Assembly: GCF_052425735.1 (NCBI RefSeq)
Contig: NC_135763.1
Span: forward strand, 19,716,001 to 19,780,000
DNA length: 64,000 nt
Reading direction: 5' to 3'
Source of the DNA: Oculina patagonica
Taxonomy: Eukaryota
In this document: piece after piece, positions 21,274 to 58,312 of the stretch
How the letters are laid out: each line of letters starts with the position of its first letter
How positions within the stretch are numbered: the stretch's first letter is position 1
Notes under the pieces: model-generated
Seen by the model: the letters and a program-made list of their open reading frames with translations, nothing else
What the model was told of the DNA's origin: nothing
Database searches by the model: none
Position numbers and translations under genes: made by a program

Positions 21274-23617
21274 TCATTGCTGCTCAGTTATCATTTTTTC
21301 CTGTACTTGAATAACACGCGCATTGCGTTGATTGCCTCTTATGGCGTTTGCAACTGATCTTATCCCCGTCGGGCCTCTCTTTTTTCCATCAGCAGAGTCA
21401 CTTTGATTTTCCACCTGGAACTGAGTAACACGGGTGCTGCGTTGTGCACCTCTCAAAGCAAGTGCCACTGATCTAAACCTCGCTAAGCCTCTCTCGTTTC
21501 CATCGGTAGAATCTCCTTGATTCTCTGCCGATAATTGAGTGACACGAGTATTTCCCTGTTTACCTCTCAATGCCCGTGCAACTGACCTAAACCTCGCCAG
21601 GCCTCTCTTGTTTTCATCAACAGCTTCGCTTTCTTTCGTCTCATGCGCATTGCGCTGGGCACCTCTCAAGGCAAGCGCTACTGATCTAAACAGCGTCAGC
21701 CCCCTCTTGATCTCTTGAGCACCGTCGCCTTGATTATTAGCCGGTGCAACTTTGTTGTTAGCCAACAATGCCGCACGCATGCGCTCAAGCTGTTCGGGCG
21801 TGTGCCTCTCAGTGCTGTGATCTACGGCGTGTTCACAGAAGTCAGCACCCAGTCTCTCCTCGTACTCAGAAAACCGGAAATGGATAAACTTGCCGATGAT
21901 GTAAAATTGGGCAAACGCGATAACCGCCGACCAGAGTCCAATCGTTAAACAAGCCAGAAGCTGTACTCCAAGAACCTTTATATGACCACCTTTGAAGACA
22001 CCGTATGTTTCGGAGAAATCCTCCAGGCGGTCTTGCTCGACGAACAAGCCAACAGCCAACATACCCCATATGGACGCGCCAGCATGGGTCGAAATAGCAC
22101 CAACGGGATCATCAATCTTCAGCTTTTCTAACATAAGCCATCCCATCACCGAGATCACGCTGCCAATAAAACCTATGAAAATGCTCTCCCCAGGCCTAGC
22201 AACGGCACAAATGGCTGTGATACTAACCAGGCTCCCCAGTATACCCGACATGAGAGTTGGAACATCGACACGCTTGAAATAAAACACACCGAACAAGTGA
22301 GCAAAGATTCCCCCGCCAATAGAAGCATTCAAGGTGCAAACGGCTGATCGAGATGCAAGTTTCCATTTGCCGCCGCTAACTCCAAACGTGCTGCCGCAGT
22401 TGAAACCGAGCCAGCCCCACCACAGCATGAATGTACCCAGGATAACATTTGTTGGACAGGCCATCTTTTGTTTCATGCCACCGCCAGTAAATTTGTTTCT
22501 ACGCGGTTTTAGTATGATGGTCCCCACTAAACCAGCAACACCACCCACCAAGTGCACGGGGCTGGCTCCACCCACATCGATCACTCCAAGCTCCTTTAGC
22601 CAGCCGTGATTACCCCAAACCCAGTAGGCGGGAAAACAGAAAGCCAGCGTGTTTGTGAACGAGAACACCATGTACGCCTGCAAATTCGCGCGTTCAGCGA
22701 TGGCGCCTGATACGATCGTAGTCGCTGTTGTTGCAAAAGACGCTTGAAAGAAATACAAGGCGAACACACTTCCCATTTTTGACTGGCTTGCGTCGGCAAA
22801 AAAGTTACTTGATCCTGAAAACGAACCATGATCGTCAGATTGTCCCCGACTGAAAGCGAATCCGAACATCCAATAAGACAACCCGCCAAAAATTACATCT
22901 AGGGCGTTCTTGACCATTATGTTGGTCTCATTTTTCTTGGATACCATTCCTGAAGGTAGAAATACGAAAAGCTATTTAGACGTGATCAGTAAGGCAGGAG
23001 GCAACTGACAAAAATGACCCACTTGGGTGTTAAATATTTTCATTTTATTCGACCAAAACCAGAAATGAGACCGGAATTGCATCGGTACCTGTTTGAACAC
23101 ATCAAAGATAATAACTTTGACAAAAAATCACGACGTTTCAAAGACATTTTGTTCTTCAACATCTATTGCCGGTTGTTGAAGAGTGATCAACAAAAATGGT
23201 GTCACGAAATAAGGAAAAATACTAAGCCGGTGCGCATTTAGATGAGACTCGATTGAAAATTATGTTGTGAATGACTACAGTAGCAATATAGAGAACCCTA
23301 AAGGAGAACCCTATGTTTGATTCGGGACCATAATCCCCATTAAAAGGTTTAATAAGCACATTTGCTATGAAAATAAATTATATCTTGTATCTAGTTTTAC
23401 TGAAGTTTTACTGAAATTCTTCACCTAAAGATCTCTTTGTGAACACAGGAATTTTACCTGATTCGACGAGACCAAATCCAGAGATCATGGTAAAAATGAT
23501 GAACGCGCTTGTCAAAATCCACACTGCATCGCCCGGGCCAACTTCACTTGTGCTTGCGGCGATAGTAGAAGGAACAAATGATGGTGTGACATTTGTGGAT
23601 GATATGTTAGTGGCCAT
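21274..23617 (-). CDS. amt: Ammonium transporter A (Amt/Mep family), 2 exons, ~611 aa
   Basis: Exons 23617-23458 and 22949-21274 with a GT-AG intron. Motifs FTMISGFGLVESG, FFQASFATTATTIVSGA, SPVHLVGG, WWGWLGFNCGS and DDPVGAISTH (both pore His present). Confidence 0.95.
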
Positions 23618-25628
23618 CCTGGTTATTTAACTGATCAGGAAAAAAATACTACTGATTTCACGGATTCTGATAATCGCTTCTCTGTATTAACAACACGGTA
23701 AACATGCTATGCCGGTCACCTTGAGTTATTGACTACATGAATTTTTTATAATGTTTTTCGCAATGAGACAAATTTGTTAATTTCTCAAATCACAGTTTGA
23801 CTTGCATATAAGGTTTTCCAACTTTATGAGTTCAAGTTTTGAGTTTTGAAATTGAGTTTCGAACTGTCAGATTGCTGCGCATCCAAAGTGGTCGCTTCTT
23901 GTTTTTTCAGCCTTCATATCGTACTGAAACTAGGCAATTTTAGGGCTGGGAACTTAGAGGATAATTAAGATGCTGCATGGGTCAGCCCTATTTCCTATTT
24001 GAGTCATGAAGATAATCCAATTATTTCTGTTTTTGTTTCCTGCTATCATAAGTCTGTCTCAGAGGGAACAATGGTATATTTTAGCAACAATGAAACTATT
24101 CTTATCGATCGTGAGCCCACCGTTTATTTTAGTCAATGGTATGAAAAGCTTAACAGGAATTCTCGACATTGAGCATATGGTATTCAGCCGACGTCTGTCT
24201 AAACCTTAGTTCAACTCTGTCATTTAAATAATTTATTTATGTGCTTCTCGTGTTTTGTTAACTCAGTTAACTCTCCATAGTGACTGTTTATAAACAACTA
24301 CAGCATGGTAGACAAGCAATTATCATTATTATAATCACTTTGAGGAAAGCAATGGCGATCGATAATACGCTTTATTGTTATTATTTTTCCATTTTTTGAC
24401 TTTAAGCTATATACATATAAACATTTAGCAAACTAGGCTATGAAAAAGTAGGAGATTTGGAAACACATGTGAAATGCTTTGTGTTCTTTGGCATACAAGT
24501 ATTTTTCAAACAGAATTAACGAGCAAGAAACTCGATTTTCTTTGCTAAAAAGCATTTAAAATAATTGTTACGAATTATGGGTAGATTGTTTCAACAAACT
24601 TGCTTTAATAATACACAATTACCACTTTTGTATGAACTCGACGTTAATAACGATTTCTTCTCATCACGAAAATACAAACATTTTTGTATCTTATATACTG
24701 AAATTAACTATACAGTTGAGACGAAAAAATAAATACATCGAATTCGAAAATTAGTCAGAAGAGCCTCTGTCTACGCGATATGCAGAAAATACATAATTCA
24801 ATAAATAAGTCTTTCAATCGTATCCCTTTCAGGTTTTAATGATGATCTCTCACAAAAAATGTTCAGTATTGACTTAATCAATCTTCACCCTTGGAGATAA
24901 TTTTGCCAATAAAAACAAAACTATTCACACGAAAACAAAAGTATCAAATTGAAAGCACAATTATACAAACGATTAAACTGTTCTGTGATATTTGAAATAT
25001 TGTGGCTAATTTTCAGTCGAAGGTTAATATACGAAGCAATGATGTCCTTAATTTGATTCTTGATGCTTATCAAGTTCTTGTAATTGGATGTAAAATAACA
25101 TTGTTACACACTTATATCTTAAAATACGTTGTACATAATTTAAAAATGTTTCTTGTTGATAAATTAAAAGGTTAATTATGTACACTTCGAATGAACGATT
25201 GAAACGTAACCAAGAACGCTGTTTTTCCAATTTACATTTAACTAAATCTCTAAAAAACCTTTAATGAAAAGATATCATTTCGAAAGATTTTTATTTTACT
25301 TGCGTTTTAGAGTTTAGAGTTACGATAAAACAATTAACAGTAGGGGAACATAAGCACGGCATTGCTTGTAAATTGCCTTAAAACATAATGCCTCAAACTG
25401 TTTAAAATACAAAATCACGCATTGCTGTTATCAGCTTTTTACATAGCTTTATTACAAAACATTTTAATTCAAAACGACAAACAATGTGCCCGTTTCCAAA
25501 ACAATATCAAGAAAAGAAAGATAAAAAATATGTCTATTATTAGAAGAAGCCGGAGCACCAACTTTACTTGAAAAATAAGCGTCGAAATCCTGATTTTCCT
25601 CCCAAGGGGACGGCGTTTAGAAAACATA

Positions 25629-27090
25629 ATGACTGAAGCAAGTCCACCAACGGAATTTCCTCTGGAAGGACTCACAGGAAGACCAATAGGTTATGAAGAT
25701 GCTACATGGATCCTTACAAGTGCATTTATTATTTTCACGATGCAGTCTGGTTTCGGTCTTATAGAATCAGGTTAGTGATTTTCAATTTCAGAAATTATAT
25801 TGCTGGAAAAAATTAATTGGTTAGTCAAACCTGTAATGTCCGAAAAACTAAACAATGCTACAAGCTTGAAATCAAATAAAAATACAGGTTTGAGAAATAT
25901 TCGGAGTTCCTTCGAATTCTAAACATGTTATTTCATGCATTTTGAGAACAGGAAACAAAATTATAAATAGAATATATGTTATTATCAAGCTTAAGTTATA
26001 GTTATAATAACGTTTTGGCCAATGATTTGATCTGGCTAACGTTTTAAAGTATGCTATCTCTGAATTTAGCTTGTAAGCAGTACGTAACAGATTTGAACTT
26101 TGTGAAGCATGATAATTCTTAATTCTTGAAATTGTCTTACTCATTTTAAAATAATGACGTCTTATGACGTCTCTTAGCCTGAGAATTTCACAAAGAAAAA
26201 AATTCAGTATGATTTTTTGGCTAAAACATTAAGACCCACTTGAGAAGAAATGGTACAGGTTCTTTTAGAAATATTTGTTAAATAAAACCCCAAAGGATCC
26301 TATCTGCAGTTTGTTGGTCAAGGCTTGCAGTCTTGTTCCCGGTATCATGTCAAAACGTTTCGCATCAATCTTATAAACATAAAAATAAAAATAAAATTGA
26401 AAAAATTAAACCACAGTATAGTCAGTCCATGTGATGTTATTAATTTAAAGAAGTTAACAAGATATTCGGTATTTCCTCCTTGGAGTTTTGAGACATTTTT
26501 AAACTATTTTTTACGCGAAGTTTCTTCCATGTTACTGATAATTAAATTTTTACATCGCAAAGATCCTCAAAAGACAAATTAAATGATTAAAAGAAATACT
26601 TGAGCATTTTACAAGACGTTATGCTTAAAAATATTAAAATTATATTTAACAATTGGCCATGTTCTAAACGAGCAGGGGACTGGGTACGAACATATTTTTT
26701 CTTGGTACGAATATTCAATATCGATTGAATTGAATATGGGGCACGTCATCTGAAAGAGCATCCAAAAATTAGTAAATTTACCGAATTTGATGGTTATTGG
26801 TTTAAACACAAAGACATGGTGCACTTTTAAAATAAGAGAGCTTAGTATGGATTGGAGGACGCCTGTCCCTCCAATCCAAACTAAGTATACCATGCCTTTG
26901 GGTTTAAACCAATAACCGTCAAATTTGGTAAATTTACTAATTTTTGGATGCTCTTTCAGATGACATGACTCATTTTTCAAATCAATCGATATTGAATGTT
27001 TGTACTGAAGAGAAAATATGTTCGTGCCCAGTTCCCCGCTCGTTTTGAACATGGCTAATTAGACTACGAGCCCGAGTTTTCTATGAGCAA

Positions 27091-27126
<36 letters not shown>

Positions 27127-27127
27127 A

Positions 27128-27163
<36 letters not shown>

Positions 27164-30100
27164 GAAACTCTAAAGGATTGCAGTCCAAAACCTACAATAT
27201 TGTGCACTTTGAAGACAAAAGTCAAGAAAATTTACCGCTTAAAGAGCTACGCGCGACTGTTTTCTTTTGGCGAATAGAAAACAGTGGGAGAACCAATCAG
27301 ATTCGCAAATTTCCAATAGAACACAGCTGAGTTTCTATTAAATACAGATAGAAATAAGTCATGCACGTTACATTTAAATAATGCTGTTTCTTTTCCTAGG
27401 AATGGTTACAATAAAAAATGAGACTAATATAATGGTTAAGAATGCTATCGACATCATCTTCAGCGGTCTGTCGTTCTGGCTTTTTGGTTTCGGATTAAGC
27501 TTTGGTGTGGATGAAGGTACAAATGCTTTCACAGGGGTCGGGTATTTTCTCACGGAGGTACCCATCGAAAAGGGGCAAGTTTATTCAATGTATTTCTTCC
27601 AAATGGCGCTGGCTTCAACAGCAACAACAATTGTCTCTGGAGCAATGGCCGAGCGGACGAATCTCAAGGCATACATGTTATACTCATTTGTGAGTACGTT
27701 CTCGACATGTTTTCCAACTCATTGGATTTGGGGAAAGAACGGACTTCTCAAAGAACTCGGGGTCATCGATATCGCTGGGTGCTCTGGGGTGCACCTGGTT
27801 GGCGGTGCCGCGGGGCTGGCTGCTGCTGTCATGTTAGGGCCCAGACTAGGGCGCTTCGACGACAACAAAAAACGACCCCAGCCGTGCTCCATGACAAATG
27901 TGATGCTTGGGACGTTCATGTTGTGGTGGGGCTGGCTCGGGTTCAACTGTGGGAGCACCTTTGGCATCAGTGGAGGTACGTGGTTACTAAGATAAGATAA
28001 AGATAAAAACTTTATTACCGTGTCTGTGTGTTTAGCCCTTATGGACTAATTGGGGACACAATTAAAATACCTAAAATACTATTAATAATGCTAAGCTAAA
28101 AATATTTAAAATACTTAACTAAAAACTAATATTTACAATGTCTTAAGCGCAACAGAGTTTGCAACAGTTACTATTGTTGTCCACGTAGTCCGATAGATTG
28201 AGTTGTTTAATTTTAGTTTTGAATGCAGCCACAGTCGGCGAGTTTTTCAAGTCTTTGCTTAATTTTGACCATAGAAGGGGTCCGAGATATCTGATACAAT
28301 GTTTCCCGTAGCGTTTAGTATCAAAACGCGGTAAGACAAAATCACTGTTTCTGAGCGAGTGTGTAGTGTCTTTGCGGACAAAAAAGGCAGAGACGTTGTC
28401 TGGCGCAAGCCCGTTTTTGACCTTATACATAAGCGTTGCTGTATCTTGTAAACGCCTATTATATAGTGTGGGCAAATCTGCCCGTCCCGTTTCGGCGTGG
28501 GATCTGAATATAGCTCTTAATGCGCGTTCCTGAATTCTCTCGAGTTTCCTTTTGTCCGATGACTTACAAAACTGCCATGTTAGATGGCAGTATGTTAGGT
28601 GAGGTAAAATAAACGTCTTATACAGTAATAGCTTAGCCCGTGCAAGATATTAAATTGCGAAGACGAGAAAGTACTCCGACATTCTGGCTGGCCTTAATGC
28701 ATAGCGCACGGATATGCTCGGTGAACTCAAGATTATCGTCGATGTGAACTCCCAGTAGCTTGATTTGTTCTGTTTTTGTAATGTCTATGTCATCGATGTT
28801 GAGGACTGTATCGCTCTTGTCTGCTGATTAATAACAGCATAGGAATAAGTGGAGTCCAATTCTGTCTGTCGGGAATAGTGTCTCCATGTGAGACCAAATT
28901 CTTACAACTACCATTAAAGTAAATGTACGACAATCATTTAGGAGATTTGATATTTCAAGATTGCGTCTCACTGATGACGGCAAAACGTGCTAAGTACCAC
29001 CAATGGTTCAATATAACTGCATTTTCTGTCGTTATACTTTTTAAGCTTCTTGTTCCCCTTATGTATATTTTCAGCAAAATGGAAGTTAGCTTCTCGGGCA
29101 GCGGTCATTACCCTAAATGGCTCAATCGGTGGTGGAATCTTGGCTATTGCGTACAGCTACATTCAAGATGAAGAGACACTGGATGTTCCGACTTTCGTAA
29201 CGGGAATCCGCGGGGGCCTGGTAGCAGTCACTGGCATTTGTGCTCTGGCGAAGCCGTGGGAAGGACTATTGATAGGAGTTTTTGGTGGGCTGTTCGCATG
29301 CCTGCTTTCCGACGCCATGATCAAACTGAAAATTGATGATCCAGTGAACTGCGTTTCTACCCATGCTGGGTCAGCGGTATGGGGCATGATTGCTGTGGCG
29401 CTGTTTGTGGAGCAAGAGAAAGACGAAGGCTTTGCTGAGGAGAAAGGGCTTTTTAAGGTGCTGCTTAAATAAGTGTGTGCAGATAGAGTTTTCATTTCGT
29501 TTTTTCTTCCATTTAGATTAATTCACCCTATTTCCATTATACTAATGTTAGCGTTTTGAACAAAGTTAATTTAGTTCTGGCGGTGAACAAATGCCTGGTT
29601 TTTACTGGCAACAGAAGCATTAAGCAGGCTGTATAATGAATAAATGTAATGATAAATAAATGAATTGATGTATAAATATCCAGAGTCAATCTAGATTTCG
29701 AGAAAATCAGACGTGTTCGAAACAAAAGAAAACGACAGTCGTTGCTATGGCAACCTTTGTGATTAAGTGACCAGTAAAAAAATTAAACGTTGGTCATATT
29801 TGATCATTATAGCGTATTTTGGCTCAATCACGTTTATTTTTTACAAGTATGCAGCATGCATTTAACCGTTTAGTCCTAGCTGTAGCGAATTAAGTTCTTT
29901 TTACTGGTCCCCAATCTTTGGTGTAGTAGAAGCTGAGAGATGGAAGAGCTTATTAAAGAAATTTCTTGCAGGGAGGTAGTTGGCGACTGCTTGGTGTTCA
30001 GTTACTAGCCTGCGTGGTGACAGCTGCTTGGGGAGTCATAACAACAGTTATTTTGCTTTACGCGATAGAGAAGACGGTCGGTATACGACTCACACGTGAA

Positions 30101-30676
30101 GAAGAGCAGCAGGGCTGTGATTTGGTGGAACATGGCATCGGCGAAGAAGACGAAGACGAGGACGGAGACAAAGGGGAAGTCGACACGGGCGAACAAACGA
30201 AGAGACCAAGTGCGCTAAAAAGAAGCACACTAACTGAAGTAGAAAAGTTCAGCAATGAAGGATCAGAGGCGTCAGGGGAAAGAAAATTCACAGGAGCGTT
30301 TGTGATGAGGTTGCCGTTTATTGCTCGCGCCCTCAGACTCAAAAACAGGAACACAAAACCACTTAAAGAAGAACTGAGTGGCGCTCAACCTACTCGCGTT
30401 GAGAGCTCAGCTGATGCACGAAAGAATAAAGAAGATTCACCAACGCCCGACGATTCAAGCCCACCTCGTGTTATGAGCACCAAAGATATACGAAGGGAAA
30501 ACGACGACACGCGGGTATCTGACGATGTGCAATCAATCTACAGTATAGAGACAGATATCGAAGAGCTCTTAAGAAGGGATGGGGAAACTTCATGCTATGT
30601 TATGAATGCAAAAAAGCCAACTATGGACAAATGCACACAAGTTGCCTGTGAACATGGCATGCTTTTTGAGTTGTAG
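25629..30676 (+). CDS. amt: Ammonium transporter B, 4 exons, ~601 aa
   Basis: Exons 25629-25770 (MTEASPP..FTMQSGFGLIES, absent from the ORF track), 27400-27975, 29075-29457 and 29972-30676. All introns GT-AG; total 1806 nt in frame. Motifs SGVHLVGG, WWGWLGFNCGS, DDPVNCVSTH. Confidence 0.93.
26655..27056. mobile_element. Foldback MITE inserted at AATT into the left arm of hairpin 2
   Basis: AATT|GGCCATGTTCTAAACGAGC ... GCTCGTTTTGAACATGGCT|AATT; nearly the whole element is an inverted repeat. Confidence 0.8.
27057..27345 (+). mobile_element. Non-coding element beginning with GA-mismatch hairpin 2 (27057-27154)
   Basis: TAGACTA-CGAG-CC-CGAG-TTTTCTATGAGC..ATAGTCAA-CGAG-GC-GCA-GC-CGAG-TTGACTAT..GCTCATAGAAAA-CGAG-GG-CGAG-TAGTCTA; CCAATCAG near the distal end (~27293). 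The right boundary is approximate. Confidence 0.75.
27988..28825 (-). mobile_element. 5'-truncated CR1/L2-group LINE in Amt-B intron 2
   Basis: ORF 28143-28475 (LPTLYNRRLQD..SLRNSDFVLPRFDTKRYGKHCIRYLGPLLWSKL) is an ORF2 C-terminus; short (TAAGA)n-type tail at 27988-28005. Confidence 0.85.
29679..29787. mobile_element. Fragment of the MITE family seen at 44856-45649
   Basis: AGAGTCAATCTAGATTTCGAGAAAATCA..GTTGCTATGGCAACCTTTGTGATTAAGTGAC matches ~45482-45585. Confidence 0.75.
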
Positions 30677-31757
30677 ATAGAGTGATTTCAGTTAACCCGT
30701 GAAATAGTTATTACACTTTTAGATACTATTAGACACAAATTCCATTGTTTTCTTTTGTTTCCGCACAAACTATTACGCACAAACTGCTAGATATTGTTTA
30801 CTGTTCATACATATACGTACAATAAACGTATTGTCAAACATTTTTATTGCTATAGAAAGAGGTCACAGTGCAAACATTTTATGTGCAACGTCAACCTTTG
30901 GTGTGATTTCACATTTAACAGTTTATAAGAGTAAAAGATTAGTTGGGCAATAGAAGCTTTGCTTGTCTGTCATTTTTTTTAACGTCTCTAATTGCAACCC
31001 ATAAACTAGCAATGAAAACGATTTAAAACAGGATAGCTGTTTTCTAGTACTGTTATTTCATTGTATCTTTATCTCTTCTGTTTTGATCATGTTGGCACAG
31101 AATTACAACAGAAGAATCCAACTATTCATACTAATAAACATGTTTTGCTCCTACTGCAAACCTTCGTACGTAATATTATTTAATAACTAGCTATAACATA
31201 CATCAGTATAATATCACTCTATTCAGCATGCATTTTTTCTTAATATATAACCAAGAGACTAAGATTTCAAACCACTCCTTTTCTTGAAGTGAAGTTAAGG
31301 TTCCTGACAATGGCTTCCAGCACTTTGAAAAAAATTCTACCACTCTATCATGATCAGATACTGCTACAATAATTGCATCAAACATATACCTTATCATTGG
31401 TGAACAAGTTGTGGTCACTTTTGTGACAACAGGTTACCATAACAACAATATAACCTGTTAAAAACACCCGTAATGTAAGCTTTAAGTGCTTATAACTTAA
31501 TAGCGAGCTCTGTAAACCCTCCATTTTTATTATCAAATTGTGATAGGCATTAACATTTCAAACATTTAAGGTGTTTCTGAGCCCCCTAAGCAAAATATAT
31601 TTATACTTTGCAAAGAATTGTATCTTACCATGCTAAACCCAATGGGGGTCATTACGTTATCTCACAAGAAAATATCGCAACAAATTTGCTGCCATGATTA
31701 AAATGCTTTTTTTGTTCAGGTCGGCTCCCAAAACTAAAAGTGATTTTCAAAGCACCT

Positions 31758-34700
31758 CTACTTCTTCTTGTTGTTCAAGTCACTAAAACTCAGTCTAATT
31801 TCTCTTGCGTCATCCGCTGGTGTAAGGGTTATGATCACAGGCACTTTCATTTTGGGAAGGGTGGAGCCCCTGGGGACTTTTTTTCCCTCATTGCCCGAGA
31901 GAAAACCCGACTTTCTTTTGGATGGCAGAACTTTATCCCACTTGAATTTGGTTTTCGCTGAACTGCTGATATTGTTGGAGAAAACATTTTCGTTAGCTTC
32001 CTGGAGTGACGGCTGTCGTTTATTGGTTGAGGTAATTTGGCGATCCTGTGATACATTATCGCTTATAGATTCGGAATCAGTTTGCTCACAATCTTGTAAC
32101 TCAGCGTCACCATTCGTGTTTTCACCCTGTGCCATACGACGGTTGTTATCATTTAAAGTTGTACCTTCAGTTTTACCTCCACTGGTCGGGAACACTCTGT
32201 TCTGAGATCGTGGGACAGGACGCACACGACTCTCGGTCTTTGCTTGTGATTGGTCAATCCCATGCTCGCAAGCGTCCGCACCCAGAACTTCTTCCTCTAA
32301 TGGAAATCTCAGCCCAACAGATTTGTCGATGAGGTAAAGCTGAATGAAAACTGTAATGATTGTCCATGCGGTTATGGAAACGCATGCCAAGAGCTGGACT
32401 CCGAGTATTTTAACATGGCCTCCCTTGAAAGCACCATATGTGTCTGAAAATGTATTCTCAAGCGTGTCTTTTTCGACAAACAGCCCAACAGCTATCATTC
32501 CCCAGATTGAGCCTCCCGCATGTGTAGATACAGCACCGACAGGGTCATCGATTTCGATTCTGTTTAGAAGTTGCCAGCCGATGATTGAAATCGCCGAACC
32601 AATGAAACCAATAGCAAGACTCTCCCCAGGCCTCACAACACCACATATGGCAGTGATGCTGACCAGGCTACCAAGCACTCCAACCATGAAGTAGGGAATG
32701 TCCAACCTAGCGAGGAAACATTGTCTATCAGTACTCCTGACAGCACATATACACGTTGAAGCTCATTTACGTCAGCCACCTTTCATATTGTCTTTTTTCT
32801 TCAACGTTAAACATTTATAGATCTTTCCCAGTTTCTAACGTCGCTCTCACCTCATTGGATGAGAGCACCTAGGACCGAGATTGCACTCGGCTAACCTACA
32901 GTGCTAAGATAACTTGGTCGTGGTTAACTATCGTGTTTAAAAGCTTATTGTCTGGGCTCCATAAAATCTCACCTGTTACATTTAATATAACTGTAAAACG
33001 TAGCGAACACGCCACCACCGCATGAGGCATTTATAGTGCAGACCGCTGACCGAGAAGCAAGCTTCCATCTTCCACCGCTGACCCCAAATGTGCTGCCGCA
33101 GTTGAAGCCAAGCCAGCCCCACCACAGCATGAACATGCCTGCAATGAAGAATAAAATCAATTACAAACATTATTCCTGAAAGCTGTGTAGAATAACCAGA
33201 GTGTCAATCTTGTTCAGTGTTAATCTAACACCCCGAGCCTGCTTTTCTCTTGGTCAGCAGGCTGCTCTGGCCAGTTCCAATTTAAAAGTCGGCGATTAAC
33301 GCACTTCTGCTAGAATCTGACTGGCTGACAATCAAAACTGCGGCGCATGCTCAAAAATCAGACTTGGTCAGAGTGAGAGCTCTTGATGCTGACCCAATAG
33401 CGGGCTCGAGGGACGAGGTTGATATGGTGGCGTGTAAAAATAGATTAAAAACTTGAAACTACATGTATCAAATTGTGTGTCGGGAGTAGGGATATGGCCC
33501 ATTGTTGAGAGCGCTCGCCTCCTAGCTATCAGTGTGGCCCGGTTTTGAATCTGGACCTGAATTTGGACCTGGTGTCATATGTGGGTTGAGTTCGTTGTTG
33601 GGTCTCGTCCTTGCTCCGAGGGTTTTTCTCCGGGTTTACGGTTTTCCTTCCTCCACCAAAAATAAAAGTTTAATTCCAATGCGATCTTTGACGGATGCAC
33701 TTACATTTTCTAACGAGCTCCTTGGGACTTTTTCGTGTTACATGGGTATGCAAAGTACATTAATTTCATAACTTGTTTTACATTTTGTGATTAAAAAAGC
33801 GTTTTCCCTCAACAGAAAAAAAAGAATAACAAGCAAGCAAAAAAACAACAACAACAAAGCAAACAAACAAAAAAACAAACAAACAAACAAACAGAACCAG
33901 TCAACGTACTTACCAAGCAACACATTGGTCGGGCTTCCCATGTTATGTCTCATGGGTGCACCAACACCTGAAACACTTTTGAACCTTCCCACTCGAGGCT
34001 TCAGCATGATAGTTGCGACCAGTCCTGCTACTCCTCCAACGAGATGCACTGGGCTGGCCCCACCCATATCGACCACGCCCATGTTTTTAAGCCACCCGTT
34101 GTCTCCCCACACCCAGTGAGCAGGAAAACAATAGGTCAAAGTATTCGTGAAGGCAAATATGATGTACGCTTTTAAGTTCATTCTTTCGGCAACTGCTCCT
34201 GACACTATAGTCGTTGCGGTGGTTGCAAAAGATGCTTGAAAGCAGTAAAGTGCAAAGACATCCCCCATGCGCGTTTCTTCTGCATCAGTGAAGAAGTTTC
34301 CGTAGCCAGAGAATGCATTAGCCCCGTCGTCGTTTCCAAACGTGAAGGCAAAGCCGAACATCCAGAAACCCAAGCCACCAAAAATAACATCAACTGCGTT
34401 TTTTACCATTATATTCGCCTCGTTCTTCCTTGAGACCATACCTTAAATAAAATCGACAAGTAAATAACTATTACACAGCATTGAACAAAACATACTGGTT
34501 TTTCAGTGAAAAAAAATCGATAATCTGTCGATATTGAAGGGAGAGGTCACAATATTAATCTGTGATCCATGCAGCAACATATGACACTTCTTTTTAGTGT
34601 AAAGCGATGATTTACAACGGCAGTCATCTTGCCTTGCCTTCTCTTCCTATATTTGCCTATTTTGTAATAACACAACCGAGTTATCCGAGTTATCATACTA

Positions 34701-38700: not shown

Positions 38701-39754
38701 AGCCACCTTTAATAAATACTAAACAATTGGACACTATTTCACACTTATTCCATGGTTTTCTTTTGTTTGCTTTTGACTATCAGATACTAATTGTTCGACA
38801 TTGTTTCACGGGTTAAGTAATACCACTCTAGCTGAAATCAGTTCGTATCGCCAACTGACTGTAACTTGTGGGTTTTTAATAAAGTGTCATTTTTAAGTGC
38901 CCTGAGGTCCTTTCTTGCCTAACCCAGGTCAGTTAGAAAAAAGCGAGAAAAATAAGGAAAAGTGGAAAATGGTGGAGGAGAAAGAATGAAAGGATGATTG
39001 TTTTCTCTCAAAATGGGAAGACACTGTATACGGCCAGAAAAATTGGGGAAAATGCATTGCTTATGGAAAGAGCTTAAGGATAGAAATAATGCCGTTTGTC
39101 AGATAATTTAAATAACTCAAATACCACCCAAGCAAACATTTCGTCGTCAAGGTTTTTTCTTTCTTTTAACATGAATTGAGATAAGCTCCCCAGTGAGTGT
39201 AAAATTATCGACACCGGTGAAACAAAAATATTTAATATAAAGTTTGATAATTTTAGTAAATTGACGCCGTTGTTGAATAGCAAGGAAATAAGATTGAAGA
39301 AGAAAATATGTTTAGAAGAACGGCGAGTTTGTGCCGCCTTTTGCAGGGAACATATTTTTGATATAATTGCTCTGCTACGCTTAGTTCATCGCTGTTGTAA
39401 AGCACTACAAAACAACAAGCGTTTATGAGTTTGTTTAAGGCACTAATCGATTTTTCTGTTGCAAGATTTCGAAATCCATTCATAGACAATGCAATTCATA
39501 GGCAATGTGTGAGGAGTTTAAAGACATTTCATGAAAAGAAATAAAGCTTGAATCTACTAAGAAAAACCTCGCTTGACAAGGATTTATCGTCCTATAATTT
39601 TTTTCTTTCTTTCTTTGTTTGCATTTACTCATTGTAAATCGCGATGGGAGTTATTTGAAATCTAAGCTATAAAATCTGAAAAAAAAGTGTCCAAGCTTAT
39701 TATGCGTGAAATGCAAAATAAGCTTAAACAACCTGAAAGAAGAATTCTTGAGAA

Positions 39755-42700
39755 ATGAATTTTACTCAAAACGTTTCCAACGCTGTAAATGTAAACGGTA
39801 CATCGAGTGAACCCGTTCAGCTGAATTCGGATGATGCGACATGGATTTTAACAAGTGCTTTCATTATATTTACAATGCAGTCAGGATTCGGACTCGTAGA
39901 ATCAGGTTTGTATATCGTTGTCTTCAAAGTATGGGTCAGTAAGATATTGAAAGTTTCCTTTAATGAGAATACTTCATCCGTGGAATGTATAACACTGTAT
40001 CCGAGCAACGGACAAATACTGTAGCTTTGCTAAGACGAGTTAAGATTAATGAAGTAATTAACAAATTTCGCATACCGAGCTACAAATACCAAACTACTTT
40101 GAAGACTGTGTCCCTGTTCCAATCATTTCTGTTTAACAGCTATCATGGCAGTGCGACATTACATCATTGTTTAAATTTTGGTCTGATTTAACACAGGCTT
40201 AAGATTTAAGACAGGCGGTACTCATAAGATCCAGAGCTTAACCGAGAGCAAGAGCTGATTTGTTTAAAAAAAATTAATATAGAAAAAATACAAAACGACT
40301 GCTGATATTACAGTTTAAAGTCATTTTGAGCTATTGACATTCTGAGTGAAATCTTCACTTGGCTTATTCGCCTCATGAAATATTAATCAGTCTATTTCAG
40401 TCAAACAATCAAGTCGATTCCAGCATATACAGCTTAGTTCTTTGGTAAGGCTCAAAAATTTGAAAACGACGAAAATAAATGCAGTCAGGTGCAAAAATAT
40501 CACGAATGAACTTTTGTTTGTTTTATTTTAATTAAAGAAACCTTCGAAAAAGAAATATCAGTTTCTGGATTTACCATAATATTTTCACAACTAGAAACAG
40601 ACATAAAGGGTTATTAAAAACAATTATATTTAGAGCTAGGCTATATTCTAAAAGCGAGTTTCCTCGTAATGTGATCATTGTGAAAGAAAAAGCAAAAGAA
40701 ACTTAACATAAACATTATGAAAATCATAAACAAAAAAGCAAAGAGACAAAATATAAACTACATCACTTAGTATGCAAGAGTATAAGAAATACATGGCTCC
40801 AACTTCAAGTGTGTTTTGAAGTGTACATAACATTGAAAAAAATGCCGATGAACTTCTTTTCATTTGATAATTTCTTCAATTTTATATTTCAATGTTATTA
40901 ACTGAATTTCAGACAAACATGACTTCAAACTAGCTTTTTTATATTAGAACCTTTCATTGTTTCAGATTTATTACCATAATTTCTAAATAAATTAAGAGAA
41001 ATATACAAATCAACTGACAGTTTGAAAACATTTTGACCGGACATTGGTTTAACCACAACATCAATCTTTCTAGGTTTAGTTTCCCAGAAAAATGAGGTTA
41101 ACATCATGGTTAAAAACGCTGTTGACGTCATATATGGAGGACTTTCCTACTGGTTATATGGATTTGCCTTCAGTTTCGGCACCGATGAAGGAACGAACGG
41201 ATTCTCTGGAATAGGTGAGTACTTTTGTCGTAGACTTAGGGAAAAAAATGCCACATGAACACGTAAATTAAACTGAACGCTTGCCCATATGTTGTTAAGG
41301 TTCATTTGTTTAAATCAGTCACTGTTGCATTACCGTGCAGGTTACTTTGCGATGGACGTGGAGGCCGAGCAAGGAGATGTGTTCGCATTGTATTTCTTTC
41401 AGATGTCGTTTGCCACAACTGCTACAACTATTGTATCAGGCGCGATGGCGGAGAGAACTCATTTAAATGCGTACACAATTTACTCTTTCACCAACACTAT
41501 ATCGTACTGCTTTCCTGCGCACTGGCTTTGGGGTGAAAAAGGCTTTCTCAAGGAACTTGGTGTTATTGATGTCGCAGGTAAATGTTCAAATGTGACCGAA
41601 GTTGACAAGGTTCACGTAAATGCGAAGAAAATTCAATGCAGACAGTTTAAGAAAATTAAGCTCTGGCGGTGTTATTAAAATTGTAGAGAAAGATCTGAAC
41701 GAACGAATGAACGTTTTACAATATCTGTCCAATCAAGAACAACAACAACCTGGAGGCCATGTGTTTTTAAACTAAACAAAACAGTTGAGCAGCGATATAT
41801 CAGTATTTTTTATGTTAATTACGCGGTTCTTCTAGTCTTCTGATAATAGCATCGCAACATTTCTTTCAAGCGTATTTTTTTTTTTAGTTTTCTTTCTGGA
41901 GAAATTTTCGCACAACACATATTTCCACCCATTGCACATGTAATACCAAACGGTAGTTTGGGAAAGTGAACTCTTTTTTCCATGAACATTTAGTGCCAGA
42001 TCTGATTGCTTTACACTTCTTTTGATATTTGGTTTTACACCAAAACAATATCCCCTTGTTGACGTGTATATCTATTCTTGTTACCAGTCTGCTAAAAACG
42101 CATTGAAAGAGCACGAACAAAACTGGTACTTATACCTAATCGTACCTTTTTGGTACGCTTCGGCGGCAAATCAGGCGAGTTTGGTCGAGCCATGGTTTGT
42201 ATTTTGGCGAGACGCAGTCGAGCCAAGATACCCATGGCGAGACCAAACGAGCCTGATATGCCGCCGAAGCGTACCAAAAAGGTACGATTAGGTATTTACC
42301 GTACCCAAATTCAGCCAAAAATCCGGTAATATTATTCGCTTTGTTGAAGCCATGCTTGCCATGTACGTAGCGCAAAATGTGTTGACCTGCTTGTATTGAT
42401 ACTTTTTTGGTCTTCAACACTTTTATCAAGTCCTCTTCTCACATTTTTTACTCTTTCGTTTGGAGTTTTATTCTCTACATTTTCAAAATCCAAATTTAGC
42501 TTAAAATGTGGAAACTCCGACTCCAGACCACTGTTTCAGTCTTAATGTTTCATTATTATATGGCTACAATAGTACGCGCGCTCTGATTGGCTGCTGAGCT
42601 GGCATTATTTTCTTGTAATGACCGGACAATAAATACCGACAAAATGTAACTATCTAGTCGACAACTGAAAGAAAAATATTAGCATACCGATACTTCTTTA

Positions 42701-45700
42701 GTATGAGCGACGAAGAGAGCCACAGAGAGCAAGAGCGAGTTTCACCTCGGTGTTTTTTAGATATTTCAGTTTAAAATAGCGCTAAAAGGCCATATAATAA
42801 ATAAATTATTAACCTCGTCCGTTCGGTCATTACATGGGGAATCTCAGACCTCGGCCTTGATGTATTGACCTCGCTATCGCTCGGTCAATACATGAAGGCC
42901 TCGGTCTGAGATTCCCCTGTAATGACCTCACTCTCGGTTAATAAGTAGTATTTACTCGTCGGCAAACATCGCGCCATTGTCGAGCGCGCTCAAGTTTAGT
43001 TTTGGCGGGAAAGATTTTATCATTTTACGACCGGTAAACACCAGCTAATTAAAAATACTAGGTTCCGTTTTATTGGTAAAACCTTTTTTCAATTCATCGT
43101 ACTGTAACACTACTTTACTTCAAAGTGACCGTGATATGGTGGCATATCAGGTCAGTGACTCGATATCGTAGGATATCAGGACAGTAGATCGCGCTTTTGA
43201 TTGACTACTTGCGTATTTGGGTACGGTAATGATCAAAATGGCATGTCTTGTTTCTATAGGATGCGCAGGTGTTCACTTAGTTGGAGGTGTGGCAGGTTTG
43301 GTGGCCGCGATCATGCTGGGACCAAGACTTGGACGATATGACAAGTCAGTCAAAAAAGGCAAGCCGGGTTCACTGACTAATGTGATGCTTGGGACGTTCA
43401 TGCTGTGGTGGGGCTGGCTGGGGTTTAACTGCGGTAGCACATTTGGCATCAGCGGAGGTATGTAATTTACATCTCTATGGAATTATTATAGATTACCAAA
43501 GTGGCTTATTGTGTAAGCATAATTTTTCAGATTTTTCCAATGACTACATTCCGCAAGGCTAGAGTAGGGGTCCAGTAATCCTGCACCGATCCAAAGCGGC
43601 TCCGTGATTGGCCTTTTTGTCCACTTCCGTAACGAAATGTACCGAACCAATCAAATGCAAGGTTTGGCTTGTCATGAAAGTTGGCCAACAAGTAAGTTGG
43701 CGGTTGTCCTGCGCCGATTCTATTTAAAGCAGCTCCCGTGATTGTCTATCCGCGAGAACAATAGGAAATAATGTTCATAAAATATGTAACGAGCATACCG
43801 AATGTACCGAGTCTACAGATCGTACCGAGTGTTTCGAGGGTACCAAGTGTACCGAGGGTATCGAGTGTACTGAGTGTACCGAGTGTACCGCGAGTGTACC
43901 GAGACAGTTTTAAATTAAAGTTCTTAACAAAACACCAATTATCATAGAGATTAAACTATTGTTTATTTGACATTCTGTCTCCAGTTAAATCAGTTCCTAA
44001 ATCACATTTTGACCAAGTGAAGAAGTGTTTGAAATAAAAAGTGATTACTGGCGGCCATCGTGGCCAAACAGTTATTGCGTTTTTTTTTCGAATGGCTACA
44101 GAACGATTCTACAACAAAAAAGACAAAAGTTTACCCTGTATACACAGTGAAAATACATCAATATCCTTGATCGTATATGCAGCTTCGCTAATTAACATAA
44201 CCGGAAAAGGGCAAGGTTAAAATTGTGAAACGATACGGAAACATTTACATATTAAAAATGACAAGATTGCTTGCGAGTTCGAAATTTCAGTTCCCTGGTT
44301 GATAAGTAACGCAAGACGCAAATAAGTAAGGTGACGGGAAACGAGGTTAAATTCCAACTACAATCCAGAATTGAAGATGCTAAGAAATACACTGAGACTT
44401 AAAGAATACTTTAGCCAAAAAGGAATGGGTTCTCGTGTTGTGTCCCGTTTTCTGCTGATAAAAAACTGTTCAAACGACTTCGCGCGCTTCCTCTAGCGAA
44501 CGCGAAGAGAGTTTTGGGTTTCAATCTCGGCCATTTGTTTTCCTGTTTGTTCATGAAACCACATTTATGAACAAAACTTCTGATCAACAACCGAACTGTC
44601 GTTGCACTTGAGCGAACACTTCTGTACGTCTACTGAAAATGAAAAGAGCCACAATCAGACGCGAATTCTGCAGAACTTAACGAGATAATAAAAACTCTAC
44701 TCAATCCAAAAAATCTTTAAATATCTCAGTCTATATTTATACCATTTTAAATAAGTCTCTTTTGACGGGTAACGAACAAAAAGTTTGCCTTGTAGAAAAT
44801 GGGACTAACAATTCTTTACCAGGATCTGGAGACAACAGGAACCCACCTGTCTTAAGGAGGCTCGATGTAGTTTTTTTAGCCGAAGGGTGGTTGTTTTGAA
44901 AATTTACATTATCTAGGAAGCCAATGTTCGATTTTTGCCAAAATACACCTATAATGATCAAATATCACCAAATTTTAATTTTTTACCCGTCAGTAAGCCA
45001 CAAAGGTTACCATAGCAACGATTGACGTTTTCTTTTGTTCTCAAACAAGCTTGATGTTCTCGAAATCTAGATTGACTCTTGGTGTTTATTTTTTGATATG
45101 TTAATGTTTAGTAGATTGACTAACTGTTGACGAAATTTTAGAAAAATCTGTAAGAGCACTTTCAAGTAAATGAAGAATGAAATTTTCAGAAAAACGCCGT
45201 TTTAATATAAAACAGGCGCTTTTAAATTGTTTTGTATTATTTTAGCGCAGTTACTCTCACTGAAATATAAATACTTACACCATCAAAAACCATTCACTAA
45301 AAGCGAAAGAGTTTTTGCTTTATTTTGTAAAAATATATCGACTGCCAATTGTAGGAAATTATAAGAAAATAACAAAAACTTCATTCTTGATTTACTCTTA
45401 AACGCTCTTACAGATTTTCCTAAACATTTTTGTACAGGTAGTCAATTTACTATACTTGAACATATCGAAAAATGAATACCAAGAGTCAGTCTAGATTTCG
45501 AGAAAATCAAGCTTGTTTGAAAACAAAAGAAAACGTCAATGGTTGCTATGGTAACCTTTGTGATTAAGTGACGGGTAAAAAATTAATTTTAGATAATTTT
45601 AATTTTCAAAACAACCACCCTTCGGCTAAAAAAACTACATCGAGCCTCCTTAAATCCAAGTTCTATTTATTGTAAGATCACAAAGGTAACTACACTTCAA

Positions 45701-48700
45701 ATACTAACATCAGTTTATGATAGAGTTTTAACTGTTTCGTGGGTTGCTCTGCGCGCCTGATTGTTCGTTTTCCTGATAGCTCTTACAGTCAAAACAAAGA
45801 ATACTGCATTGAAAGTTAAGAAAAAAGCAACCGGCAAAACAAAAAAATACAAATTTGCAGTTGGCTTGTTAATCCAACACCCCTTAATACCTCCATAGTG
45901 AATAGCAAACGCGTTGGACTGGTCAAGAGCAACGCACACTACAACAAAAACAAAGGCAGGAATCCAACCAATTGTTATCCTTCACAATAATTTCAAACAC
46001 GTTTTCCCTCTCCTTGTATTTCTGTGTTGGACGCGGGTTTTGGAAAATACCTTCCAAGTCTCAAAGGCGATCATTGACATCCACATGAAAGAGACAAGAA
46101 AAAAGTAGTGCAACAAAATGGCAATCATTTTACATGCAAATTTAGCTTCGACGTACCCGGTCGCGAGATAAAGCAAGTGAACCATTAAATGTGCCAAAGT
46201 GAGATTAATTAGATTAATTCCAGGTAAAGTGCGAAGTTCCTTAAATAACGAATAGGTCACTAAGACCAAAATTAAGCTTAAAATAGACGGAGAGAGTCCA
46301 ACATAGGTAATTACTATCAAAAAAATATTATCCTTTCTTTCACTTCGGCGACCAACCTCGTCTGTATATGGTGCTTCGTAATTTGATGAACTGTGTACAC
46401 ACCCAGGTTGTGTCATTAATGAAGATAAACCTTCCAGGTTGAAATAATTCTCGTGAAATGTTCCTATACAGTGAACCGTTTGATAAGACAACGTACTCAC
46501 TTTCGTTTAACCCAACTAAAACCCCAGAACAGTTTAACTGTGGTTGTTTACAGACTGTTAGGATGCCGATAGGAACAACAGACCCGTTTCTCCATTCCGT
46601 TTCGTTCGTATAATAGTACCCAGTCGCGAGATAAAGCAAGTGAACCAGTAAATGTGCTTTTTCTCTTGAAATAGTTGTCCTGTATCTCTGATTTTCACTG
46701 CGTTTCCTTCAAACTTAAATGTGCTTGGGTGGAAAGTTTCAACTTTGGTTAATTTAGAATGATTCGAAAGTAAATCTATTGCAGTTATAAGAGTTGAGTA
46801 GAGACGTTTTTCTGTACGCTCGGCACAGTACATTCAGTACACTCGGTACATTCGGTACAGCCGGTACAATTAGTACAATCGGTATAGTCGGTACACTCGG
46901 TACACTCGGTACACTCGGTACACTCGGTACACTCGGTACACTCGGTACACTCGGTATACTCGGTACACTCGGTACACTCGGTACACTCGGTACACTCAGT
47001 GCGCTCGATACAGTCGGTACAGTCAGTACACTCGGTATGCTCTTTACACTTCCTATGCTCTGTACAGTCGGTGCCATGGTTACCTTGGCTATTTGGGATA
47101 CCCATAGTAGTCATGGTACGGCTGGAATGGTTCTTTGGATATGGGATGTAAAATTAGCAAGCCACTCCCAGAGAAAAAAAATCACCACAAAACATGCATG
47201 GTTACTTATTTAAAGATTATGTTTTCGAATTAGCCAATCAGAGAGCCACTTTGGACCGGTGCAGGACTGCTAAAAAATATTGACTCCAGGGATTTAGTTC
47301 TCAAACTGTTAACTCATGCCGATGGAGTGAAGGCATTCTTCATATGAAAAAGTGAAATGCTGGTTTGGAAGTCTTTGGGTATGCGTTAAACCAACCTACT
47401 GCCGGAACTATCAATTCTGAGAGGATTCTGTATTAGTCGGTCTTTTGAAAAATGGGATCGGAAGATTACTTCTTCTTTCCGATAAGGTTATTGCCTTGAA
47501 ATATAAATTTGGTGGGTTTTTTCTATCGGCCACTTGTAGCTAATGGTGGTGACCTTTTTTCCCCAACTGATCATGTCACCACATTCAATGAGTAACTTAC
47601 TGAAATATTGCTTCTTTGAAAGACGAGTTAATCTCGAAACGGTAGCACTATAAGATAACAAGGAGTTTCCTATTTATTGTTTTTAACCTAAAAAATTTTT
47701 ATGCAACAACTTAGTTACTCAATAAATTCAATTCAACAGCAAAGTGGTTGCTAGCCTCCAGATCAGCTGTAGTGACGTTGAACGGTTCCATTGGAGGAGG
47801 CATCCTGGGAGTGATTTACAGCTTTCTGTTTCGAAAGCGGAAGCTGGATGTAGCCATATTTATAACTGCCATCTTGGGAGGTCTGGTTGGTATCACCGCT
47901 ATCTGTGCCGTGTGCCGTCCTTGGGAGGCCTTCATTATTGGATTCATTGGAGGGCTGGTGGCCTGTGGCAGTTGTGACATTATCGACAGGTTTGTTTTGA
48001 AAGTTTAACTTATTCAGCTGTATCGGTCTAACCATACACTGCCGGCGCCACTATTATTTCATGGTAATTTAACTAGTGTTTTAATCACATTTGGTCATAA
48101 GTTATAAAATTGTTGTATAGTTTATTGTCGCACATGAAAGTTTGTAATTAATTACTTTAGTAGTTTTAGAAGGCAGAAAACAGCCCTTTTATCCATATGT
48201 CATTTTATATGTCTTGTATGTTTTCTTTTTCTATTATTGTCAACGAACACGCACAAGGGTAAGTACGTTCTTTTTTAAAATACCATTTCTTCCCTTGATG
48301 CAATAACTACCATTCACAACGAAGCAAAAAGTTGATAGAATTGCTACCACTCAAATATGAAACAAAATTGATTCATTATGTGATTATCTTCCGTCTAGGT
48401 TCAAAATCGATGATCCAGCAGGTTGTATAGGAACTCATGCTATGGCGGGCATCTGGGGAATGATTGCAGTGGGTCTGTTCGTCGAAGAGGAACCGCTGGA
48501 AGGATTTTCTCAAGTCCGTGGGCTCTTCAAAGGTGGTAGTGTCAAACTGCTTGGTGTCCAGATCCTCGCGTGCGTGGTTATTGCTGCTTGGTCAGGCGTT
48601 ACAACGTGGCTGCAGCTTTTTCTCATCAACAAGATTTTACCACTCAGGCTAAGTTACGATCAGGAGATGATGGGTGAGATTTATTAAATTTATTTCATTT

Positions 48701-49907
48701 CGCAATTTATTACATTTATCGACGTCAAAAGTCAAATATAAACCAAAGTGCATTGCTATCGGCCGTTGCCTTACTAAATAAAGTTACCATCATGTCATTA
48801 TTATAACTATCACTATCATTATCATGCATTGTTACCAATTTCGATTGTGTCACCAAAGAAGGGCTAATGATATAAAGCTCGAAATGTCAAGCATCAAAAA
48901 GTTCTGGCTTTCTCATTCACGGCTTTAAAGGTATAAAGGAAAATCTTAAAGTAATCTTCTCCTGTAGTAAGACGACGACTAATGGATAGTAATGTTAATG
49001 ATAATGTTAATTATAATGATAAGGAAGACGACGACGATGACGATAAATGTTTTATTCTTGAGTAACTGGTGGATACATTTTTGGAATAAACTGTTGTCTG
49101 TCTTTGTGAAAGCAGTGATGCCTGTGGTTAGGGCTCTGCGCTTGAACTCTGCCATTAGCTCAATTTTTCTCGGTAACCCGAGCTTTACAATCCGTCCACC
49201 TATGTAAACAAGCAAATTGTCAATTATCCTGCAAACAGGACAATTGCGGTAATAAGCACTGGGCTTAAACAAGTTCGTAAGGAGTTTTGGGTGGGCTTAT
49301 ATACGAAAGGCTGGGGCTTAATTATATCCGGGGAGAGGCGTATAAGCAGAATAAATACAGTTTGGAAACGAGCCATGTCTTTAAGTTTAAATTCGTAAAA
49401 AGCAACAATTTATACCCTTGTTCAGTACTGTCATCCAGCAGAGGGGGGCTTATAACCGATGTATTTTTTGTTTCCAGGTAGATAGGCCTATAACCAGGGG
49501 GGGGGGGGGGTCTTCTAACGGAAATTTCCCGGTATTTGTTTGAGTTGCTTAATTGGCTGATATGCCTTAAAAGAAGCAGTAAAGGTTCCACCTATTTCCT
49601 TTCAGGGGCGGACAAACTTGAACACGGCATCGACTGCAACGACTCTGAAGACAACTCGTCTGACCTTGAAGATAACGTACTGCAGGCGGAGGAGGATGGA
49701 ACGGACAGTTACCGAGGATATATCACAAGTGATGCTCCGGTTCACGGCTACAGCGCCGAAATGGAACATATACTATCCATTCAGAATCTTCCAGGATGTG
49801 TCAACTATGGTCTTGAGCCGGGCGAGACAGGAAGTGTAACGCATAGAAAGATAAAGAGTGAAGTTGGAATACAGGTGGATCTGGATGATCCAGAGTCGTT
49901 TTGCTGA
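39755..49907 (+). CDS. amt: Ammonium transporter D, 7 exons, ~517 aa
   Basis: Exons 39755-39905, 41074-41214, 41341-41577, 43260-43457, 47740-47989, 48399-48673 and 49606-49907; all GT-AG; 1554 nt in frame. Motifs FTMQSGF, FFQMSFATT, AGVHLVGG, WWGWLGFNCGS, DDPAGCIGTH. Confidence 0.93.
42132..42295 (+). mobile_element. GA-mismatch hairpin 3 in Amt-D intron 3
   Basis: Near-perfect 164-bp palindrome interrupted by three CGAG/CGAG pairs (42176/42248, 42186/42238, 42208/42219); apex CGAG-AC-GCA-GT-CGAG. Confidence 0.85.
42553..42950 (-). mobile_element. Non-autonomous Crypton-like element with GA-mismatch hairpin 4 (42806-42944)
   Basis: The minus strand has four tandem GA pairs and apex CGAG-C-GATA-G-CGAG. 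The distal end carries CCAATCAGAGCGCGCGTACTATT (42590-42568), nearly identical to 53514-53536. Confidence 0.8.
44856..45649. mobile_element. Foldback MITE with TTAA TSD (Kolobok-like)
   Basis: TTAA|GGAGGCTCGATGTAGTTTTTTTAGCCGAAGGGTGGTTG ... CAACCACCCTTCGGCTAAAAAAACTACATCGAGCCTCC|TTAA plus long internal inverted arms. Confidence 0.9.
45715..46810 (-). pseudogene. Class B (adhesion/Methuselah-like) 7TM GPCR pseudogene fragment
   Basis: ITYVGLSPSILSLILVLVTYSLFKELRTLPG, CKMIAILLHYFFLVSFMWM, GW and GCWI..FFVLPV..NAVFF motifs; at least two frameshifts, a stop at 45982, truncated after TM5. Confidence 0.85.
46820..47075. repeat. 9-bp minisatellite (ACTCGGTAC)n
   Basis: Direct reading; source of the TEC, PSV and GTL low-complexity ORFs. 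Confidence 0.95.
49235..49534. mobile_element. Degenerate MITE with GGGCTTAT subrepeats in Amt-D intron 6
   Basis: Repeated GGGCTTA(T/A)A motifs; right end GGAAATTTCCCGGTA. Confidence 0.5.
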
Positions 49908-57958: not shown

Positions 57959-58312
57959 TGTTTCTACAGTTCTCACAGCGACCGAGAAGACGGAAAATCA
58001 CTGGACGATCGCCTGGACTACACTACTTTCAAGGTAATCCCTCGGAAACGAAATCTTTCCGAGTATCCGTTGTTTATCATTTCGGAATCGCTTATTTAAA
58101 CATTAAGTGATCGCACGGAGGTTTAACGCCTCGTGTTTATCCACGCAGTTAAATATTGCGTATTTACCCACGAACTCTGTTCGTTTACAAAGCAGAAATT
58201 AAACTGTTTTTGTCCGTATATATCGCATTTTCGTAGCTTTAAGTTAGAGCTTTGTTATCGAAAGATAGCAACCTTTACTTACGAACATTACGCTTACTCG
58301 CATGACGTGCGA

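Follow-up and report, generated by a model that had tools for sequence, protein, structure and literature searches.

How did four AMT genes come to lie side by side, in alternating orientation, in the genome of the facultatively symbiotic stony coral Oculina patagonica? The question is raised by a 64-kb stretch of contig NC_135763.1 (positions 19,716,001 to 19,780,000 of the forward strand), hereafter called the window, in whose own coordinates all positions below are given. Motif scanning in six frames and tblastn, for which a provisional protein A served as query, identified exactly four Amt (PF00909) genes in the window, which are arranged in the order A(-) B(+) C(-) D(+). The preliminary description of this DNA had read the same order from the letters alone, and the gene models given below bear it out. 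A and C belong to one sequence subtype (X-type), and B and D belong to another (Y-type). We put a probability of about three in four on the reading that A-D are the Oculina copy of a stony-coral four-gene AMT cluster that would have come from a duplicated divergent two-gene unit.

The relationships among the four proteins and the conservation of their order point to this origin. Pairwise protein identity was 56% for A-C and 55% for B-D, and 45% for both A-B and B-C. In a maximum-likelihood tree calculated with IQ-TREE from 50 cnidarian and bilaterian AMTs (493 columns), A grouped with C at a support of 100/100 and B grouped with D at 100/99, which are the clades that the preliminary description had expected a phylogeny to recover. 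In approximately unbiased (AU) tests, a tree that placed D with the anemone genes without B was rejected (p-AU 0.002), and one that placed B+D together with the anemone Y-like genes was allowed (p-AU 0.15). B and D also have an intron in common at GISG^ (phase 1); in five paralogues, three of them other Oculina genes and two from Exaiptasia, an intron lies seven codons later (KLASR). As read from the gene structures, the intron shared by B and D is independent support for the B+D grouping. Alternating order and orientation, combined with reciprocal sister pairs, are the pattern expected if a two-gene unit was duplicated in tandem, and the earlier proposal of a duplicated divergent two-subtype module is accordingly supported by the tree and by the conserved order.

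The order was compared with partial views, each covering two or three of the four genes, from four other stony corals:

Orbicella faveolata (robust): C(+) B(-) A(+)
Desmophyllum pertusum (robust): end of C, then B(-) A(+)
Stylophora pistillata (robust; LSMT01000368.1, approximately 92-116 kb): B(+) C(-) D(+)
Porites lutea (complex): Amt tail (+) at the position of B, then C(-) D(+)

Order and orientation were identical to those of Oculina in all four species, and the exon layouts of the orthologues matched as well. Because the same arrangement occurs in robust corals and in Porites lutea, the cluster is older than the split between robust and complex corals. The stony corals carry a fixed four-gene AMT cluster made up of two sequence subtypes, one of them with an altered pore residue. 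Among the corals and anemones examined, head-to-head pairing of X and Y was seen in stony corals only. The 529-Mb Oculina genome contains approximately eight AMT-type loci and approximately six weaker PF00909 loci. Since four of these approximately eight AMT-type loci fall within 29 kb, the clustering of A-D is not a matter of chance. The genome-wide locus survey detected no further AMT-type loci near the cluster on the contig.

Gene models of the cluster

The genes and the spacers between them were modeled as follows:

21274-23617 (-): gene A, X-type AMT, 611 aa; two exons, 23617-23458 and 22949-21274
23618-25628: A-B divergent intergenic region, 2,011 bp, single copy in the genome
25629-30676 (+): gene B, Y-type AMT, 601 aa; four exons, 25629-25770, 27400-27975, 29075-29457, and 29972-30676
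30677-31757: B-C tail-to-tail spacer, 1,081 bp, from the gene models
31758-35731 (-): gene C, X-type AMT, 608 aa; four exons, 35731-35548, 34441-33914, 33138-32973, and 32706-31758
35732-39754: C-D divergent intergenic region, 4,023 bp
39755-49907 (+): gene D, Y-type AMT, 517 aa; seven exons, 39755-39905, 41074-41214, 41341-41577, 43260-43457, 47740-47989, 48399-48673, and 49606-49907

The genes are spliced and lie in DNA of 32-45% GC (range for the window); all four models are intact and open with GT-AG introns, and the stop codons of A and D, at 21274 and 49907, delimit the cluster. The start codons lie at 23617(-) for A, 25629(+) for B, 35731(-) for C, and 39755(+) for D, giving ATG-to-ATG distances of 2,012 bp for A-B and 4,024 bp for C-D, in agreement with the gaps of about 2.0 and 4.0 kb estimated before.

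Intron 1 of A was verified by a spliced contig from transcript run X1 that skips 22949-23456, and intron 1 of B was verified by a spliced contig from the same run. The 5' untranslated region (UTR) of A extends to 23734 or beyond, and that of B begins at or before 25523. Model C was identical to the deposited O. patagonica protein ACROYT_G022251 at 585 of 585 residues, the deposited protein beginning at an inner Met, and model D was identical to ACROYT_G022252 at 517 of 517 residues; this residue-for-residue identity to deposited proteins validates both models independently. Orthologous genes have the same layouts, with two exons for A in Orbicella and Desmophyllum, seven exons for D in Stylophora and Porites, and identical exon boundaries for C in Nematostella and Actinia. 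The tail of B is colinear with those of the Orbicella and Desmophyllum B genes. Every exon-sized piece tested matched PF00909. Exon 2 of A corresponds to profile positions 24-395 of 399 (E=3.5e-97), and the exons of B, C, and D together span the same positions; the first transmembrane segment (TM1) comes from exon 1.

One of the approximately eight AMT-type loci of the genome is a gene on the small contig C55 (7.4 kb). The sequence around its FNCGS motif matches a gene at C5:3125xxxx, so that C55 probably represents a haplotig or a collapsed duplicate and not an extra locus.

Age and number of the duplications

In the mechanism that we favor, the X Y X Y cluster would have come from a divergent X(-)Y(+) unit that was duplicated once in tandem. 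A single event would be the most economical way to account for how the genes are ordered and oriented and for both sister pairs. This duplication would have preceded the split of robust and complex corals, and the tree leans toward a duplication before the split of corals and anemones, which would have been followed by losses in the anemones. Two versions of the timing remain: the unit may have been duplicated before the coral/anemone split, the anemones having lost A, B, and D, or it may have been duplicated in the coral stem, with A misplaced by the tree.

Several results weigh against one duplication of the whole unit, and they bear on an alternative in which the genes were duplicated singly and inverted in separate events over time. 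A and C could, for example, have parted before corals and anemones diverged, and B and D later, the alternating order being a by-product. The anemone X-type genes joined C and did not fall outside A+C (100/99), and forcing A together with coral C cost 26 log-likelihood units, a borderline result (p-AU 0.053). These two findings imply that the A/C split may be older than the corals, and no anemone orthologue dates the B/D split. The B+D clade consisted of stony corals only. Moreover, two introns that are kept by C and the anemone genes have been lost from A, indicating that the histories of A and C differ. Among named records, gene A itself was seen in robust corals only, its position in Porites and Stylophora lying outside the compared flanks. 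The two duplications may differ in age.

In contrast, a stepwise route needs at least two duplications plus rearrangements to reach perfect alternation, where one duplication of the unit suffices. The path length in the tree was 1.55 for B-D and approximately 1.2 for A-C (summed by hand on the same tree), so the B-D distance is not below the A-C distance and both splits are of similar depth; an anemone orthologue of B or D by which the B/D split could be dated is missing. We consider a stepwise origin unlikely and prefer the duplication of the divergent unit.

The X and Y types may themselves have a common local origin. Intron 1, which follows directly after L[VI]ESG in phase 1, occurs only in A-D and the anemone X-type genes and is missing from three other Oculina AMT genes and four anemone Y-like genes. 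A tree with X and Y as sister groups was not rejected (p-AU 0.37). The shared intron 1, together with the V/I position in L[VI]ESG, hints that X and Y could be sister lineages produced by a local inverted duplication. No sign of recent gene conversion was detected between the partners of a head-to-head pair: third positions of exon 1 match at 8-13 of 28 sites in every pair, and this saturation of synonymous sites in all pairs argues against any recent exchange.

The anemones Nematostella and Actinia each have a solitary C-like gene, which lies between a 7tm G-protein-coupled receptor (GPCR) gene and a CUB/peroxidase gene, and the anemone Y-like genes are solitary or in direct tandem. A 7tm_1 GPCR gene also adjoins the AMT locus in Porites, after D (L005, 20749-26087). 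In the two anemones, such genes precede the C-like gene (L004, 7523-8650; L007, 6673-7734), and the orientations differ. It is possible that these GPCR neighbors are a remnant of an older synteny.

Subtype motifs and pore residues

The six-frame scan located all of the motifs by which the two subtypes had been distinguished in the preliminary description (FTMISGF and GGASPVH in A and C; FTMQSGF and AGCxGVH in B and D):

23474-23494 (-) in A and 35564-35584 (-) in C: FTMISGF
25734-25754 (+) in B and 39869-39889 (+) in D: FTMQSGF
22552-22572 (-) in A and 34044-34064 (-) in C: GGASPVH
27777-27794 (+) in B: AGCSGVH
43259-43276 (+) in D: GCAGVH

In D, the motif AGCAGVH is interrupted by an intron, exon 3 ending in ...VIDVAG and exon 4 starting with CAGVH. 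FTMQSGF and AG(C/S/A)xxVH were present in every other cnidarian clade and in the bilaterian outgroups. From this distribution, the FTMQSGF/AGCxxVH pattern of B and D is read as the ancestral animal state, and as such it carries no information on the kinship of B and D; we therefore rejected it as a mark of a B+D subtype. FTMISGF and GGASPVH define the X-type clade, which takes in genes from Nematostella, Actinia, and Actinostola, and on the same comparison the motifs of A and C alone are derived. The earlier argument from shared motifs thus holds for A and C but not for B and D.

X-type proteins have Ile in place of Gln in TM1, and the segment before their first pore His reads GGASP. These derived changes lie next to the pore, and they leave two testable differences between the subtypes, Gln or Ile in TM1 and AGC or GGA ahead of the first pore His. 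At the TM1 position of the X-type Ile, the alignment likewise shows Ile in E. coli AmtB, Val in A. fulgidus Amt-1, and Gln in the AMT1-like structures. The Asp before the first His, the twin pore histidines, and the WWGWLGFNCGS segment are retained in all four proteins, and D..xxxVH and the second His (STHAG; GTHAM in D) match the corresponding residues when 6EU6 and 8QJ3 are aligned. Because the Asp, both pore histidines, and WWGWLGFNCGS are kept, A-D are probably working transporters with subtype-specific kinetics. The X-type Ile probably occupies the position of Q57 in AtAMT1;1. In plant AMT1, the change Q57H raised the Km 65-fold and the Vmax 10-fold (PMC3355798). By analogy, a kinetic difference between X and Y may reasonably be inferred.

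A-D are closest to the AMT1-like bacterial structures 6EU6 and 8QJ3. E. coli AmtB and A. fulgidus Amt-1 (1U7G, 2NUU, and 2B2F) have the twin histidines and the Asp in common with A-D, but the overall similarity is much lower (E ~1e-25). The plant AMT1 proteins (AtAMT1;1/1;3 and LeAMT1;1/1;2) have the same PF00909 fold and share the TM1 Gln motif of the Y-type; trimers are expected. Plant AMT1 heterotrimers are regulated through the C-terminal tail, and, unlike A-B and C-D, their subunits are not encoded by head-to-head neighbors. The position of the regulatory threonine of the plant proteins (T460) appears to be occupied by Cys, Val, or Leu in A-D. The cytoplasmic tails of A-D are long, at 120-190 residues. 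Four tandem basic repeats of approximately 38 aa each (KRGLARFRSVALALRGAQR...) occupy 21315-21735(-) in the tail of A. A single similar motif (FVMRLPFIARALRLKNRN) was observed in the tail of B at approximately 30296-30361(+), in a segment that is missing from the B-like protein P0045.

Spacers, expression, and neighboring elements

The preliminary description had further suggested that each head-to-head pair might be co-expressed from a bidirectional promoter. The A-B spacer is 2,098 bp long in Orbicella and 1,993 bp long in Desmophyllum, and its length is thus approximately 2.0-2.1 kb across three robust families. It contains blocks conserved with both species at approximately 24247-24305, 24591-24690, 24778-24979, and 25064-25257. 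In contrast, the introns of A and B gave no alignment with Orbicella or Desmophyllum. The conserved blocks are compatible with promoter or enhancer elements, which is not proof that such elements are shared by A and B; the 2-kb single-copy spacer is a defined candidate for shared regulation. The corresponding C-D spacer is 2,112 bp long in Stylophora and 3,056 bp long in Porites, and blastn revealed no similarity of the Oculina C-D spacer to the A-B spacer or to the C-D spacers of those two species. Both spacers are AT-rich (32-34% GC). The C-D spacer also contains the following element:

38094-38726: dispersed repeat of approximately 0.63 kb

At least 40 copies of this repeat were found at 79-86% identity, along with reverse-strand matches at 66-71%. 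Because it matches both strands of its copies, it looks like a miniature inverted-repeat transposable element (MITE) or a hairpin element.

Both A and B are transcribed, as run X1 yielded one contig joining exon 2 to exon 1 of A and one joining exon 1 to exon 2 of B, spliced exactly at the predicted sites, at depths of 16 and 18, respectively. The contigs ended at 23734 for A (23983 at low depth) and at 25523 for B, leaving a gap of approximately 1.5-1.8 kb; these ends mark minimum UTR extents only. Two further runs, which weigh against co-regulation of the pair, contained one partner only at a depth of 2-4 (A without B in X2 and B without A in X3), and no reads on A or B exons were found in the raw reads of the poly-A run X19. 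Co-expression of the pair is suggested by one bulk run, and the single partners in the two other runs were at very low depth. Within intron 1 of B, a repeat at 26514-27448 reached a contig depth in the thousands in all runs (the exons reached 16-18), implying that it is a multi-copy transcribed element. An open reading frame (ORF) inside the same intron, at 26609-27052(-), gave no Pfam match.

Classic animal bidirectional promoters serve divergent gene pairs, as A-B and C-D are, whose transcription starts usually lie less than 1 kb apart. The A-B gap of approximately 1.5-1.8 kb or more and the distance of up to 4 kb in C-D (4,024 bp between the ATGs) lie beyond this range. The head-to-head spacers are not classic bidirectional promoters, and this part of the earlier proposal is weak.

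A broader explanation of the arrangement would be functional: X and Y would be regulated jointly through the spacer between them and would combine in mixed trimers, and this would be why the pairing has persisted. The derived X pore would modulate the activity of such trimers, by analogy with plant AMT1;1/AMT1;3. The persistence of the pairing and of the A-B spacer length in three robust families, the short conserved blocks in a single-copy spacer flanked by genes whose introns cannot be aligned, and the comparable depth of the spliced A and B contigs in run X1 are consistent with this explanation, and plant AMT1s are known to form heterotrimers subject to trans-inactivation (PMC7279009). However, the transcript ends of A and B are too far apart for a classic shared promoter, the 4.0-kb C-D spacer carries a transposon insert and showed no detectable conservation, runs X2 and X3 contained a single partner, and tandem paralogues often stay adjacent without functional coupling. 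A docking prediction would not set neighbors apart from other paralogues, since the trimer interface is conserved and any pair of AMTs would probably fit together there. On balance, the functional explanation is improbable. Slightly more doubtful still is its strongest form, in which X-Y pairing has been kept since before the robust/complex split through cooperation of the two subtypes and X, with its derived pore and AmtB-like Ile, is co-expressed with its Y neighbor from the spacer that they share and tunes or gates mixed trimers; if true, the cluster would provide a regulated ammonium valve for the pH of the calcifying fluid or for the nitrogen supply of the symbionts. Returning to the duplicated divergent unit, we regard A-D as tandem duplicates that have been retained, a neat example but not an unusual one.

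How corals handle ammonium bears on the control of symbiont growth and, as published studies of SpiAMT1d indicate, on pH control at the site of calcification. Noel 2023 (PMC10236652, Table S10 and Figs S29-S30) gives Amt1 counts of four in Orbicella, five in Stylophora, three in Porites, two in Exaiptasia, and one in corallimorpharians, describes Amt1 as expanded in robust corals, and includes a figure on the genomic localisation of Amt1. The protein family and host group are those of A-D, and the counts fit a cluster of this size. As the expansion and the genomic localisation of coral Amt1 have already been published (Noel 2023; Capasso 2022), the novelty of the present cluster is modest. SpiAMT1d of Stylophora, the gene of Capasso 2022, is described as a transporter of calcifying cells; a recent single-cell study names Rh-type transporters, and not AMTs, in alga-hosting cells. 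AipAMT1 of Aiptasia is reported to be induced in symbiosis, and its transport activity was assayed by complementation of mep-null yeast or oocyte currents (PMC10017044). The link to symbiont nitrogen drawn in the preliminary description is uncertain, and A-D could serve calcification, symbiont supply, or both.

Several other elements were observed in the window. Nested antisense in intron 4 of D, an ORF at 45982-46500(-) is a fragment that matches a secretin-family receptor over its first helices (7tm_2, E=2.8e-12); beside it, at 46754-47213, lies a minisatellite coding for VPS/CTE repeats. To the right of the cluster, an ORF at 52035-52694(-) contains DUF3504 (E=1.3e-8), a domain frequent in transposon-derived proteins. 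Two long ORFs at 58133-61653(+) contain Retrotrans_gag and gag-type aspartyl protease domains, by which this segment is identified as part of a long terminal repeat (LTR)-type retroelement.

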